Shown here: piece by piece, positions 2,848-12,736 of the stretch
Numbering within the stretch: position 1 is the first letter of the stretch
How the letters are laid out: the number at the start of each line of letters is the position of its first letter
From: Entomortierella parvispora E1425
Lineage: Eukaryota; Fungi; Mortierellomycota
NCBI GenBank assembly: GCA_020891255.1
Contig: BQFW01000002.1
Coordinates: 930,001-994,000, forward strand
DNA: 64,000 nucleotides
Reading direction: 5' to 3'
The notes under the pieces: generated by a model
The model's input: only the letters and a program-made list of their open reading frames with translations
What the model was told of the DNA's origin: nothing
The model's database searches: none
Position numbers and translations under genes: made by a program

Positions 2848-2960
2848 CGTCATTCGGGCCTTTTGAACCTCAGGGGTTTTACAGTTTTTTTTTTCTTTTC
2901 ACATCTCACTCTGCAAGTGTCGTCTTCTTTTGTTCTTGCAATAAACGCAGCAAGTTCTAT

Positions 2961-3711
2961 TTATTCACGTTGTCCCCCCTTCATTGTTAATTGCCTCATA
3001 TGTTGCCTTGCTTTACTTCTCCATGACAGGCGACTCGGACTTTGCAGCTCGTCGGGTGAACTTAATGATGTCTCTGAAGACGATTCAGACCCGTAGAGCC
3101 CAGGTGATTCACTTTTGGAATCAACCACGGTCTCTAGAAACAGCGGATAACCTGTGCTTTTCATCAGATCCATGACAGATCTCCTGGCTGGTTCAAGTAT
3201 GGAGGGTCTGTAATCGCCACTTGTCACCGCTTTAAGGATCTTGGAGCGCACTGTATCCGAGATGTTGACCTCATACGGACTATCAATGATGACAAACGTC
3301 TCGAGAATGACCAACATGTCACTTTGGAGATCGCTAAATTGCCGGATCTGGGCCTGGGTCAGGTACTGAAGAGAGTCTTGATGGAGATTAAAACTTGGAC
3401 TTGAGCTTTGGATGGATTCTAATAGGGAATAAGCACATTGCTATGATGAGGGACGTCAGTACCCATTATTCCTTTGTTGCCTCTTGAAAAAAGAGATCTT
3501 ACCCGGGAATGGTACACACCTTATAGTGTCGAGATGCTAGCCAAAATGCCAGATTCTCGTAGCAGAGATGGGACTGTAAGAACTCTCCAAACCGAAGAAC
3601 AGAGAATGGGCCAGAACCCTGACCCACGAGGATCTGGTAAAGGGAAGGATAATCAGAACTGGTTTCTGATCCACCCATACTATCGTCCGAGTCGGGATAC
3701 ATATACTGCAT
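2961..3711 (-). CDS. Small RGS-domain (regulator of G-protein signalling) protein, 2 exons (3711-3520, 3440-2961), ~223 aa
   Basis: RGS hallmarks FGEFLQSHLCYENLAFW and FVIIDSPYEVNISDTVRSKI...ARRSVMDLMKSTGYPLF. A phase-0 GT-AG intron (3519-3441, branch-like TACTGAC) joins the two ORF-track pieces in frame (HYK|QCAYSLLE). Confidence 0.85.
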
Positions 3712-5033
3712 ACTTCTAAAGTCGTTAAAGGAACTGCCAGGGGGGGAGGGGAGTGATGGTGAGATCTCAAGTGGAAGAACATCATGGCTTTTGTAGTGTT
3801 TCTTTTTTTTCTCTGAACCGTGTCGCTACTACCACCAAGGCGACAAAGAGACCACAAGGTTAGGGAGCCCAACAGTGTACCAGGGGTCGGATCAACTCGG
3901 CGCGGGGGTTGCGAGCAAGCACGCAACCAACCACCTAAACTATTCTGCCGTGCATGTCTTCAGAGCTCAACTGATAGGGGATCATTCCAACAAACACTGT
4001 GAGCCTTTTTTTTTCCTTCTCTCTCTTTCTCTTTTCTTCCTTTTGCACGCGTTTCTGACTGTCCAATTGAAGACAGAGATGTCGCGTCATGGAAGTCCAT
4101 CTTGATAAGGCAGTTCAGGAGCCTGGATCGGCGCTCACTTTCAGCGATCGGAGTCAAACACACCCTGGCTCAACAGAACAGGGCTTCCTTTGATACGCAC
4201 GGCATGGATGCCACGTGCTGGAAAAAAGACACAAAAGGCATTGCTGTAGCAAACCAAGGATGACTTCATCCAGCATGGCACAGCGGAATAGACCACGGAG
4301 AGGCCACAGATGATCATGGTTCGCTCGGAAAAGAACAGCCCCGTGTTCTGTATGTGCACGAACGTGTATAGTGCATGCATTCTTCTGCATCTCGGATGAC
4401 AAACGACCCTCCATAGAATGCCACTCAGCATGACAAGGAGATACTTGACTGAAGACAGGTACGGTCCTCATCCCTCGTCTCCTTCAGCTCCTGTGTTTGG
4501 ACCTCGATAGACTCTACGCTAATTGGAGTAGAATGGAATACTATGGAATAAACGCCATCGTACTTCCTTTAGAGCCATGGCCATCACTGTCATGTATGAG
4601 CTGCTACGTGGATTGAAGAAATCGAGAATCTAGGCGGGCGTTTGCCTCTTGTATACCATGCTCCTAACTGGTTGAACAGATAGTGGGTCTTCGCCACTAC
4701 AATAGCGATATCCTTCAAAATAATCTACTGGAGAGAGGGTTCAAACATAAATACTCCGGTAAGGGTGGCATTAGTTCTATGCATGTTGTGGCGGCGACCC
4801 CATGCATCAAAGTATCAAGGGGAGTGAAAAGCAAACTAAGGAGACGATAGGACCATAGCTTTTGCCCGCCTGTAAGGGATTCTTCAGGGGAATGCAAACT
4901 CCTGGATTTCTCTAGTTCCTTTCTCCACCACCCCTTGAACTATCGCGTGTATTGTTAGAAAATCGAATTGACTGGCTCGATCAGAGCAAGGCCCTTGTAA
5001 AAAAAAAGAGTCGAACGAGCAGAGCCTCATCGG

Positions 5034-5040
5034 TATAAAA
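5034..5040 (+). promoter_or_regulatory. TATA box (TATAAAA) upstream of the repeat-peptide precursor
   Basis: Exact TATAAAA ~155 bp before ATG 5196, followed by a CT-rich leader. Confidence 0.5.
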
Positions 5041-5195
5041 GACCCCCATATTCTGGTCTCTATCCAACAACTCATTCCTTTCTCTCCTTCTCGCCTTCCC
5101 TCTCAACCTCATCTTTCCCCCAATCACTTCCATTCCCTTCCCTTTTTAGCAACCTAGCTAAACACTTCCGCTCACATACTCTCGTATACAACAAC

Positions 5196-5984
5196 ATGAA
5201 GTGCATCTCTATTGTCGCCGCAGTCTTCCTCATTGCTGCTGCGTCTGTGCAGGCTGCCCCATACCCAGGCGGTATTCTCGACGTCAGCGATGTCAACACC
5301 GACATCAAGATCCCAGTGAATGTCAAGGCCAAAGATGTCAAAGTGCTTCGCCGACGTGACGCAGCCATCAATGTGCATGACATTAACACCAAGGCCAAGA
5401 TTCCGGTCAACGTCGACCTTAAAAATGTGAAGGTCCTTGGCAAGCGTGGAGGTGTCGCTGATGTGCACGACGTTAATACCGACATCAAGATCCCAGTAAA
5501 AGTCAAGGCCAAAGATGTCAAAGTGCTTCGCCGACATGACGCAGCCATCAATGTGCATGACATTAACACCAAGGCCAAGATTCCGGTCAACGTCGACCTT
5601 AAAAATGTGAAGGTCCTTGGCAAGCGTGGAGGTGTCGCTGATGTGCATGACGTTAATACCGACATCAAGGTCCCAGTGAATGTCAAGGCCAAAGATGTCA
5701 AAGTGCTTCGCCGAGGTGACGCAGCCATCAATGTGCACGACATTAACACCAAGGCCAAGATTCCGGTCAACGTCGACCTTAAAAATGTGAAGGTCCTTGG
5801 CAAGCGTGGAGGTGTCGCTGATGTGCATGACGTTAATACCGACATCAAGGTCCCAGTGAATGTCAAGGTCAAAGATGTCAAAGTGCTTCGCCGAGGTGAC
5901 GCAGCCATCAATGTGCACGACATTAACACCAAGGCCAAGATTCCGGTCAATGCTGATCTTCAAAAAATCAAGGTTCTCGGATAA
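5196..5984 (+). CDS. Secreted Kex2-processed repeat protein (KEP-like), 262 aa, intronless: signal peptide plus 4 x (peptide A - RR - peptide B - KR)
   Basis: Hydrophobic signal peptide MKCISIVAAVFLIAAASVQA; four 60-aa repeats, each with an RR and a KR dibasic site; the final KR is replaced by the stop codon. No homolog recognised. Confidence 0.85.
   Translation: MKCISIVAAVFLIAAASVQAAPYPGGILDVSDVNTDIKIPVNVKAKDVKVLRRRDAAINVHDINTKAKIPVNVDLKNVKVLGKRGGVADVHDVNTDIKIPVKVKAKDVKVLRRHDAAINVHDINTKAKIPVNVDLKNVKVLGKRGGVADVHDVNTDIKVPVNVKAKDVKVLRRGDAAINVHDINTKAKIPVNVDLKNVKVLGKRGGVADVHDVNTDIKVPVNVKVKDVKVLRRGDAAINVHDINTKAKIPVNADLQKIKVLG
5268..5981 (+). repeat. Coding tandem repeat, 4 x 180 bp, each unit a diverged dimer of ~90-bp subunits
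   Basis: Sequence lines 5281/5461/5641/5821, 5341/5521/5701/5881 and 5401/5581/5761/5941 align nearly base for base at 180-nt period. Confidence 0.97.
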
Positions 5985-6397
5985 TTCCTTGGTTGACAGA
6001 CACCTGCCTGATTTCATTCAGTCATATCTCACTCAGTTATTCTCCTTTTATTCATCTCCACTACTCCCGACCATTCGACAATCTATGCATTTACTGCCAC
6101 ATGTCCTATGCATCTGCCACAATAATAATAAATAGCTCCATAATTTTCTCATCAAACGCGTCGAGTCGCGCTGCATTGGCACGGACGAACGCTGATCACA
6201 CAGCACTTACGATTCGGATGTGTACCCGACATCACCGTAAATTTTTCGGGACATTGGCTCATTGGCGAGCTCCGAAGACGGCCCTCCTGTGTGCTGCAGG
6301 CAGACAGACACACACAACGACGATTTCGCGGTGTCTTCATCCGAACCCATCCTTCAATTCTCCTTCTCCCCCTTCCTCTCTCTCCACTCTGTAAATC

Positions 6398-11676: not shown

Positions 11677-12638
11677 TTCTTTTCATTTCATATTTTTGAT
11701 TATCTATTAAATGATCTCTTTCATTGTAAGAATATATCAAAGTAGGTTTTGTGTAGACTCCTTCTCTAATTAACATAAGACAACCGGTACGAACGTGGAA
11801 GAGAAGGTTCCATGTCCAAACCCGATTTTCCCCATCGTATCATCTCATCTCGTGCCACAAGCCCACACAGCGGCACTGATGGAGCACTGAGGCGCGGCGT
11901 TCTCGCTTTCCTTCCGAGCCTCGTCTTCTCTATCGCGTACTGCCTATTTTCATGGAATCTTCAACATACAAGAGATCACTCCAGCTTCGATGGAGCGCAA
12001 GCAGCTTCTAGAGTTCAGGTTGGTCGCCTGATCTCGATATGGCTAACGTGACAAACGAATATCCTCATCAAAAAAAAAAAAAAAAAAATGGGGATCGTGG
12101 TTAAGAAACCAATGCATTCTTCTGCATCATTGCGAACAACGCAGCTGAAAGCCCGTACTGAGCCTCCGGGAGGAGGCGCGCCAAAATCACCAGGGAGCTG
12201 ACTGCTGCACTCATTCACTGTGTGATGTCTTTTGGGGGGGTTGTATGTGAGTGAAGAGCGAATATCGGGAGAAAAAAAAAGAAAAAAAAAAAAAAGAATC
12301 TACCATTAACCATGCTGGCTTTCCTCCTCTGCCGCTCCACTCTTTCCTCAATTCCAGATCTACTGGCACCACAAACCGGGGCGTATAAAACCTACACGGA
12401 GTAGGACTATATCTTCCTCCCACAGTCTTTGGCTATGGTCAACTATGTGTCGCGCCTTGCGATCCTGATCGAGAATGGGCACATCAATATCGTGCACGGG
12501 AGACTTTTGACCATTGACCAAGTAAAATAAAAAAAAAACCTTCCTGTCGTTGCGTGGCAGACACGCCAGGGTGCAGGGGGAAAAATAAACCGCGTAGTCT
12601 CGCAAGGCAAAAAGTAAACGCTGAGCGCAAAAGATGAA

Positions 12639-12710
12639 TTCCCAGTCCGGGGATCGAACCCGGGCCTTGTCGGTGAGAGCGACAAATCCTGACCACTGGA
12701 CCAACTAGGA
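12639..12710 (-). tRNA. tRNA-Glu (anticodon CTC), intronless, 72 nt
   Basis: Minus strand TCCTAGTTGGTCCAGTGGTCAGGATTTGTCGCTCTCACCGACAAGGCCCGGGTTCGATCCCCGGACTGGGAA: acceptor stem, D arm, anticodon stem TGTCG/CGACA with loop CTCTCAC, T-loop GTTCGA; oligo-T Pol III terminator downstream. Confidence 0.97.
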
Positions 12711-12736
12711 ACTTGTTCGGATATCAGTCATGGATT

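Follow-up and report, generated by a model that had tools for sequence, protein, structure and literature searches.

We analyzed a 64,000-nucleotide stretch of DNA (hereafter, the window) from contig BQFW01000002 of Entomortierella parvispora E1425, a soil fungus of the Mortierellomycota (PMC8759367), and found that it contains an intronless gene for a strikingly repetitive, putatively secreted precursor. The open reading frame (ORF) lies at 5196..5984 on the + strand (262 codons plus a stop), and the 262-amino-acid (aa) protein has an exact match at 935,196-935,984 of contig BQFW01000002.1 in assembly GCA_020891255.1. Its layout is a signal peptide, the four residues AP-YP, and then eight units of 29-31 aa in which two subtypes, A and B, strictly alternate. 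The best explanation for this gene, and a likely one, is that it encodes a Kex2-processed repeat protein (KEP) that is specific to the Mortierellaceae. Its parts are as follows.

5196..5984, + strand: whole coding sequence (CDS), from the ORF read, dN/dS and third-position differences
5196..5255, + strand: signal peptide, aa 1-20, ending in V-Q-A, from sequence features and family conservation
5256..5267, + strand: AP-YP, aa 21-24, two X-Pro dipeptides with the pattern of a Ste13-type substrate, from the sequence
5268..5354, + strand: unit A1, aa 25-53, including the terminal RR
5355..5447, + strand: unit B1, aa 54-84, including the terminal KR and starting with a third Arg
5448..5534, + strand: unit A2, aa 85-113, with RR
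5535..5627, + strand: unit B2, aa 114-144, with KR
5628..5714, + strand: unit A3, aa 145-173, with RR
5715..5807, + strand: unit B3, aa 174-204, with KR
5808..5894, + strand: unit A4, aa 205-233, with RR
5895..5984, + strand: unit B4, aa 234-262, and the stop; no basic pair, final residue Gly

The seven junctions between units read, in order, RR, KR, RR, KR, RR, KR and RR, the first being in fact RRR, and the last unit ends in KVLG followed by the stop codon at the exact place of the next basic pair. Judged from sequence, the signal peptide consists of MK, a 15-residue hydrophobic core and V-Q-A; M1, K2, I4, I6, A14, Q19 and A20 are invariant across the family, and the precursor has no other hydrophobic stretch. 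A sequence-only reading of this DNA had described two peptides, A and B, separated by Kex2-type sites. The secreted, repeatedly cleavable layout was borne out, both by the signal peptide and seven dibasic junctions here and by the recurrence of junctions and termini in diverged Mortierellaceae relatives. The two subtypes are also real, but A and B are homologous to each other, and the array is therefore eight copies of one unit of about 30 aa in two subtypes. Likewise, the proposed A/B consensus captures the alternation, but three units depart from it: the initial A, an A within the array that has K in place of N behind its Pro, and the final B. Past the signal peptide, C, E, F, M and W are absent and the sole Y is in AP-YP, so the repeats lack Cys and aromatic residues, as had been stated; Val accounts for 48 and Lys for 36 of the 242 residues of the mature part. 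At the DNA level, the array is by far the strongest tandem repeat of the window (Tandem Repeats Finder: period 180 nt, 3.6 copies, 97% matches, score 1229), and tblastn found no second copy of the gene within the window.

Published criteria for KEPs are a signal peptide without a transmembrane segment, KR or RR cuts that give at least four fragments of which at least three are similar, and clustered repeats that make up at least 15% of the protein (PMC6339444). The E. parvispora precursor has a signal peptide and no transmembrane segment, as judged from its sequence; its seven dibasic sites yield eight similar fragments of two subtypes; and its units, at aa 25-262, take up ~91% of the protein. 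Since it shows all of these features, and since its junctions, termini and variation in unit number recur among relatives, it is in our view a KEP by definition, and probably one in biological terms as well.

The relatives that carry this argument are all from one family of fungi. An initial word-based (k-mer, length-filtered) protein search returned a single relative, P0001. An exhaustive profile search, in which all 1.84 billion representative proteins were read, gave 12 matches, 11 of them true relatives and one a spurious periodic match, and a second profile search added seven further relatives. The rejected match, P0003 (1712 aa, with a 15-aa Thr/Asp repeat), had an E value of 7e-17 but only 20% identity and matched by periodicity alone. 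All named relatives are annotated as hypothetical proteins and all belong to the Mortierellaceae: the hosts are Mortierella spp., M. alpina, M. antarctica, Linnemannia elongata, L. zychae, Podila horticola and Haplosporangium gracile, and M. verticillata also has a member. Thus, the homology search that the sequence-only reading had suggested did uncover relatives, though in the Mortierellaceae only; among the 1.84 billion proteins there were none from bacteria, Dikarya (Ustilago included) or other early-diverging fungi, and one metagenome contig scan found no relative. Members have between 1.5 and 8 units, those with 1.5-2 units being 83-94 aa long. The gene lies at the same syntenic position, between the gene for the protein kinase A regulatory subunit (PKA-R) and those for Tim17 and protein kinase C (PKC), in L001, L003, L005, L006, L008, L009 and L010, and copies occur at other loci in L. 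elongata AG-77 (L007) and L. zychae (L004).

For junctions and termini we read the true ORFs of these relatives from DNA. The junction Arg is invariant in alignments A3/A4 and nearly universal across relatives, mostly within a dibasic pair. Dibasic junctions number 7/7 in the window gene, 3/3 in L001, 3/3 in L007, 2/2 in L010 and 1/1 in L005, and both visible junctions of L003 are dibasic. Complete multi-unit ORFs (the window gene, L001 and L003-L007) stop 0-2 residues past the unit-final Val-Leu or Leu-Leu and never with a basic pair. Such C-termini are what a processed precursor needs, because its last peptide then matches the others after they have been trimmed by Kex1. At the other end, two X-Pro dipeptides directly follow the signal peptide in seven family members, among them the window gene (AP-YP), L001 and L004 (AP-FP), L003 (AP-LP), L007 and L010 (VP-VP) and P0002 (AP-VP). 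An alternative N-terminus, a piece of 6-7 residues ending in RR or KR, is found in L005, the L008 type and P0011. Ste13-type dipeptidyl aminopeptidases prefer XA and XP (PMC6339444), and once AP-YP had been removed, the first peptide would begin with Gly-Gly, just as the A peptides released by Kex2 would. Read from sequence, these junctions, termini and variable unit numbers are what would be expected of a processed precursor rather than of a folded repeat protein, and they indicate that the precursor is probably processed into peptides.

We propose that processing would begin with a signal peptidase cut after V-Q-A. Kexin in the late Golgi would then cut behind each of the seven RR or KR pairs, a Kex1-type carboxypeptidase would remove the C-terminal basic residues, and a Ste13-type dipeptidyl aminopeptidase would take AP-YP off the first peptide. 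The predicted products are four A peptides of 27 aa and four B peptides of 29 aa, all linear and without Cys or aromatic residues. The first residue of the B units (5355-5357, 5535-5537, 5715-5717 and 5895-5897) is the most variable position of the array, being R, H, G and G in the window gene and S in the ortholog, and the Asp-Ala that follows it is fixed; this variability would fit a ragged or further-trimmed N-terminus of the B peptides. B units also carry a Gly directly before Lys-Arg. In animals this arrangement is a signal for amidation; we know of no fungal amidating enzyme.

The precursor is under purifying selection. Between the window gene and its closest ortholog, L001 (66% identity), dN/dS is 0.24 at a dS of ~0.8. 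Third codon positions of the + frame hold 55 of 101 differences between orthologs and 62 of 100 between repeats, and this dominance of third-position differences identifies the + frame as the coding frame. Minus-strand ORFs of 292 and 281 aa overlie the repeat and are by-products of its freedom from stops. Within a species, dS between repeats is 0.07-0.57 in the window gene and 0.15 in L001; the repeats are thus more alike within species than orthologous repeats are, pointing to concerted evolution or independent expansion. Both the A and the B subtype have been kept in both close orthologs. That three frames are open across the repeat is what a tandem DNA repeat left open by chance, and not a gene at all, would look like. 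However, this explanation would have to accommodate the low dN/dS with its third-position excess in the + frame, the conservation of the ATG context, signal peptide, TATA box and promoter block, and positional orthologs in many genomes; we consider it extremely improbable and, for practical purposes, refuted. Logan contigs L011 and L012 were considered as possible transcripts, but their library type was not established and they were not counted as evidence of expression.

What kind of peptides would be released? After Kex1-type trimming, the A peptides are predicted to have 27 aa, masses of 2830-2858 Da, a net charge of 0 or +1 and a pI of 6.1-8.4, and the B peptides 29 aa, 3057-3137 Da and a net charge of +1. 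Their grand average of hydropathy (GRAVY) ranges from -0.06 to +0.28, and V, I and L together make up 31-41% of residues. The hydrophobic moment is maximal at 165-170 degrees and at 170 degrees exceeds that of shuffled sequences (p 0.004-0.03), while at 100 degrees, the angle of a helix, it is indistinguishable from shuffles (z -0.01 to 0.53). The strong polar/apolar alternation ascribed to the peptides by the sequence-only reading is near-perfect only in the ~13 residues around the central Pro, where the beta moment is ~1.0; it does not extend to the N-terminal third of the unit, which has a period-3 Val pattern. AlphaFold2 (AF2) models of the precursor, made from two alignments, have a mean pLDDT of 61.8 and 59.2 and a pTM of 0.60 and 0.62. 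They show a regular all-beta repeat with two strands of 8-11 residues per unit and place the basic pairs within a coil of 3-7 residues between units. One AF2 alignment omitted the row L010:5327-5596, which is three residues longer than the recorded protein; the same row was used in the junction tally. For each peptide we predict a pair of beta-strands arranged around a central segment that contains Pro and is strongly beta-amphipathic. Because the five models of the second run spread from 59 down to 26, the tertiary arrangement of the units is not established.

Among possible functions we rank a self-assembling or surface role first, as a tentative assignment. The composition of the peptides is beta-amphipathic, near-identical copies are many, two subtypes have been kept and the AF2 models pack the units regularly; moreover, the peptides lack residues that would mark receptor ligands or substrates of covalent tailoring. 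Our committed guess is that released A and B peptides would come together as amphipathic beta-sheets on the hyphal surface or at an interface, a role that would resemble that of the Ustilago repellents but would have been reached independently. A precedent that serves as a lead and not as a test comes from designed Val/Lys beta-hairpins, peptides of comparable size that self-assemble as sheets. More speculatively still, A and B might co-assemble in an amphipathic cross-beta layer on Mortierellaceae hyphae, and alternation of two charge-swapped subtypes would favor such hetero-stacking. When counted by eye, opposite versus like charge pairs at aligned positions of A and B number 2 versus 4 in the window gene and 4 versus 1 in L001; these counts are at most suggestive, and we did not use them as evidence.

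Several observations weigh against this picture of a processed, surface-active precursor. Junctions are Ser-Arg, and once Ser-His, in P0008, P0009/L006, the first junction of L004 and the short L008 type, and such pairs are poor Kex2 sites. The all-beta fold modeled for the uncut chain, if real, could shield the cleavage sites. Confidence in the AF2 models is itself low, as the spread within the second run illustrates, and a Foldseek search of the model against PDB gave nothing at E<=0.001, the best matches being beta-helix proteins at an E value of 0.055 with a TM-score below 0.3. Moreover, the peptides are about one-third charged, with a GRAVY near 0 and no aromatic residues, and codon usage is ordinary, unlike that of very highly expressed genes; both features count against a surface or amyloid role.

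Some of these same observations would be accommodated if the protein were secreted but never cut, its eight units folding jointly into a solenoid- or meander-like beta wall or adhesive protein in which the basic pairs are mere turn residues. The regular AF2 model with two strands per unit (pTM 0.60-0.62), the beta-helix proteins at the top of the weak Foldseek matches, sub-threshold Pfam matches to a pectate-lyase-like adhesive and an Ig-like domain, and the non-dibasic junctions of some relatives all lean this way. However, model confidence is low and no fold or profile match is significant: Pfam, searched with the protein at E<=10 and with eight members at E<=1, returned only sub-threshold matches (ChiW_Ig_like, Pectate_lyase_5 and DUF5077) and a DIM match confined to the signal peptide, and PDB sequence searches with the protein and the family profile found no match. 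Relatives with 1.5-2 units are too short for such a fold and nevertheless retain the KR/RR pro-piece, and an uncut protein gives no reason for the consistent omission of the basic pair at C-termini or for X-Pro dipeptides at N-termini. A GPI-type tail, a Ser/Thr-rich region and N-glycosylation sequons are all missing from the precursor, and with S+T at only 3.7% this is not a typical glycosylated wall protein. We therefore consider the uncut protein an unlikely explanation, somewhat less so than the improbable defensive role discussed below.

If the precursor is processed, its peptides could instead diffuse and act in the manner of pheromones or hormones, with the fungus itself or partners such as its endobacteria as receivers. 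The precursor has an alpha-factor-type KEP architecture with a Ste13-type signature, which Le Marquer et al. treat as a mark of candidate peptide hormones (PMC6339444), and fast peptide divergence, species-variable copy number and restriction to one lineage would also suit a signal. Yet the X-Pro dipeptides are confined to one place, behind the signal peptide, and do not recur at every Kex2 site; with 27-29 aa the peptides are longer than pheromones of the 9-24-aa class (PMC6339444); aromatic and Cys residues are lacking; and two alternating types have been kept in both close orthologs. Signaling is thus rather unlikely, if a little less so than an uncut protein. A role in defense, with antibacterial, antifungal or membrane-active peptides of the Ece1/candidalysin or beta-hairpin kind, has in its favor that multi-copy Kex2 precursors of lytic peptides exist, as the sequence-only reading pointed out, that the Mortierellaceae live among soil bacteria, and that the peptides are amphipathic and evolve rapidly. 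With a net charge of merely 0 to +1, no helical amphipathicity, Pro and beta-branched residues throughout, no disulfides that would hold a hairpin together and too little continuous hydrophobic sequence to cross a membrane, the peptides are poorly equipped for this task, and we regard it as improbable. Self-association at the hyphal surface keeps its first rank among the roles considered.

Reading relatives from DNA also corrected several public gene models. In L. elongata AG-77, the public 335-aa model (K457DRAFT_24215 = P0013; L007 8001-9675) is a fused product: a stop follows codon 148 of the ORF, precisely where the fourth unit finishes, and the model bypasses it with an intron. The real product of L007 is a four-unit precursor with three KR junctions. 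P0019 from M. alpina fuses the peptide gene to the adjoining Tim17, and several other public models (P0001, P0002, P0006 and P0012) start 28-70 codons early, in translated 5' untranslated region (UTR), which hides the signal peptide from secretome pipelines. The syntenic gene of Mortierella sp. 14UC (L003 7836-8368) contains one reading-frame change that the public model spans with an intron; units and GKR junctions go on in the second frame, so that the change is either a sequencing error or a real break. At the syntenic site of Mortierella sp. NVP85 (L006 3934-4383) there are three units with Ser-Arg junctions and no signal peptide was found; here PKA-R is missing between the forkhead gene and the three-unit ORF, and this copy may be rearranged or decaying.

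The gene is flanked by conserved DNA, including two elements upstream of the CDS.

4815..4950, + strand: conserved promoter block, from alignment with the orthologous metagenome locus L001 (L001 6370-6555)
5034..5041, + strand: TATA box TATAAAAG, 162 nt upstream of the ATG, read from the sequence and kept in relatives

The promoter block is ~80% identical to that of L001 although synonymous divergence in the CDS is ~0.8. It contains a 21-mer at 4923-4943 that is invariant between the window and L001, and three AGGGG/CCCCT-type motifs that resemble stress elements (C2H2 zinc-finger-type sites). The TATA box had already been named in the sequence-only reading and proved to be conserved: of eight family loci that were inspected, six have TATAAA between -116 and -170 (L001, L003, L005, L008, L010 and the window gene itself, L002), and in the other two, L004 and L007, it was not found. 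The 15 nt preceding the ATG are identical in the window and L001. Downstream, by eye, a 3' flank at 6084-6140 with a AATAATAATAAA-type stretch is kept in L001 (7335-7385) and is likely a 3' UTR with a polyadenylation signal.

Upstream neighbors of the gene are a forkhead/FHA gene and PKA-R, and downstream neighbors are Tim17, PKC, a ubiquitin-like gene and an RRM protein. The gap from PKA-R to the peptide gene (2848-5033) is ~2.2 kb and holds only short, unconserved ORFs; the gap to Tim17 is ~400 nt. All neighbors with usable lengths have introns (PKA-R, 1819 nt for 464 aa; Tim17, 860 nt for 151 aa), in line with the earlier description of an intronless gene in an intron-rich genome. A tRNA-Glu (CTC) gene lies at 12638-12711 on the - strand, between the PKC and ubiquitin-like genes.

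Why might this family be worth pursuing? It offers an unusually clean test case: the gene is small, intronless and located at a conserved locus, its unit number varies from 1.5 to 8 among genera, the masses of its predicted products are exactly defined, and RNA-seq data for strain E1425 are public (DRA013164). If the peptides do form wall-bound beta-sheet assemblies, the family would show how a phylum outside the Dikarya renders its hyphae hydrophobic, and co-assembly of A and B, if true, would give the early-diverging fungal phyla their first known hydrophobin-like surface system of ribosomal origin, evolved independently of the Ustilago repellents and of bacterial chaplins. If the peptides are instead soluble signals or defense peptides, they would bear on the interplay of the Mortierellaceae with endobacteria and plants.

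How does this precursor compare with known systems? It is outside the Rep1, chaplin, curli, hydrophobin, alpha-factor, Ece1 and dikaritin families. Rep1 of Ustilago maydis offers a parallel in layout: it too is a secreted tandem-repeat pre-pro-protein with Kex2 sites that yields similar peptides without Cys-based folds (PMC3133707). The products of Rep1 are amphipathic peptides that build amyloid fibrils within the aerial-hyphal wall (PMC3133707). Rep1 is also larger, with 652 aa giving peptides of 34-53 aa and a 229-aa piece (PMC3133707), while the E. parvispora peptides have 27-29 aa, are much more charged and alternate between A and B. The exhaustive profile search found no sequence relationship between the two, and the links to Rep1 and to chaplins drawn in the sequence-only reading are not supported as family membership. 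Chaplins and the curli protein CsgA share with the precursor short strand-turn-strand units rich in Val and Asn, and AF2 stacks the units as in repeat amyloid subunits. However, the precursor lacks a Cys pair, the resemblance, which the sequence-only reading had placed in a strand motif of the Pro-Val-Asn-Val type, is that of a short motif only, and neither a Pfam chaplin nor a curlin model matched the protein at E<=10 or eight members at E<=1. The eight-cysteine pattern of hydrophobins is absent, as the mature protein has no Cys.

Prepro-alpha-factor (MFalpha1) resembles the precursor in the enzymes proposed to act on it (signal peptidase, Kex2, Kex1 and Ste13) and in a copy number that varies among species. 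In contrast, alpha-factor precursors have Ste13 dipeptides after every Kex2 site and a long glycosylated pro-region; the E. parvispora precursor has X-Pro dipeptides once, GG or (R/H/G)D after its Kex2 sites, no pro-region, and peptides that are, at 27-29 aa, twice as long. Ece1, the precursor of candidalysin, is likewise a secreted polyprotein that is cut at KR into eight peptides. The Ece1 peptides are mutually unrelated and the active one is an amphipathic helix, unlike the near-identical, beta-amphipathic peptides of E. parvispora; the lack of helical amphipathicity disfavors a candidalysin-like mechanism, which the sequence-only reading had offered as its alternative. That reading had also noted the lack of an adjacent DUF3328 gene, and indeed there is no DUF3328 (UstYa) gene among the called genes within +/-10 kb. 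Together with the absence of F, W and Y from the 27-29-aa cores, this disfavors a dikaritin- or ustiloxin-type route.

KEPs have already been described as a class, and hundreds of them come from early-diverging fungi: 1193 were counted in 250 fungi and 7878 in 1461 strains, with an average of ~9 per Mucoromycota strain, where larger peptides are typical (PMC6339444, PMC7329392). Precursors with two motif types account for 77 of the 1193 KEPs (Le Marquer et al. 2019, PMC6339444; Umemura 2020, PMC7329392). Rep1 is the only KEP with a shown amyloid or surface role (PMC3133707), and KEP knockouts in Coprinopsis had no phenotype (PMC9769878). Our literature search found no paper on the precursor family, on the L. 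elongata locus tag or on KEPs in Mortierella. The unit motif gave no match in the supplement text of both KEP surveys, a check that covered this text and not the KEP-sequence table of Le Marquer et al. Compared with described KEPs, this family is without a Pfam model or a name and occurs in the Mortierellaceae only, while the 27-29 aa of its peptides place it with the 25-50-aa peptide class that is common in Mucoromycota. Thus, the precursor class is already known, and what is new is an uncharacterized, lineage-specific family within it.

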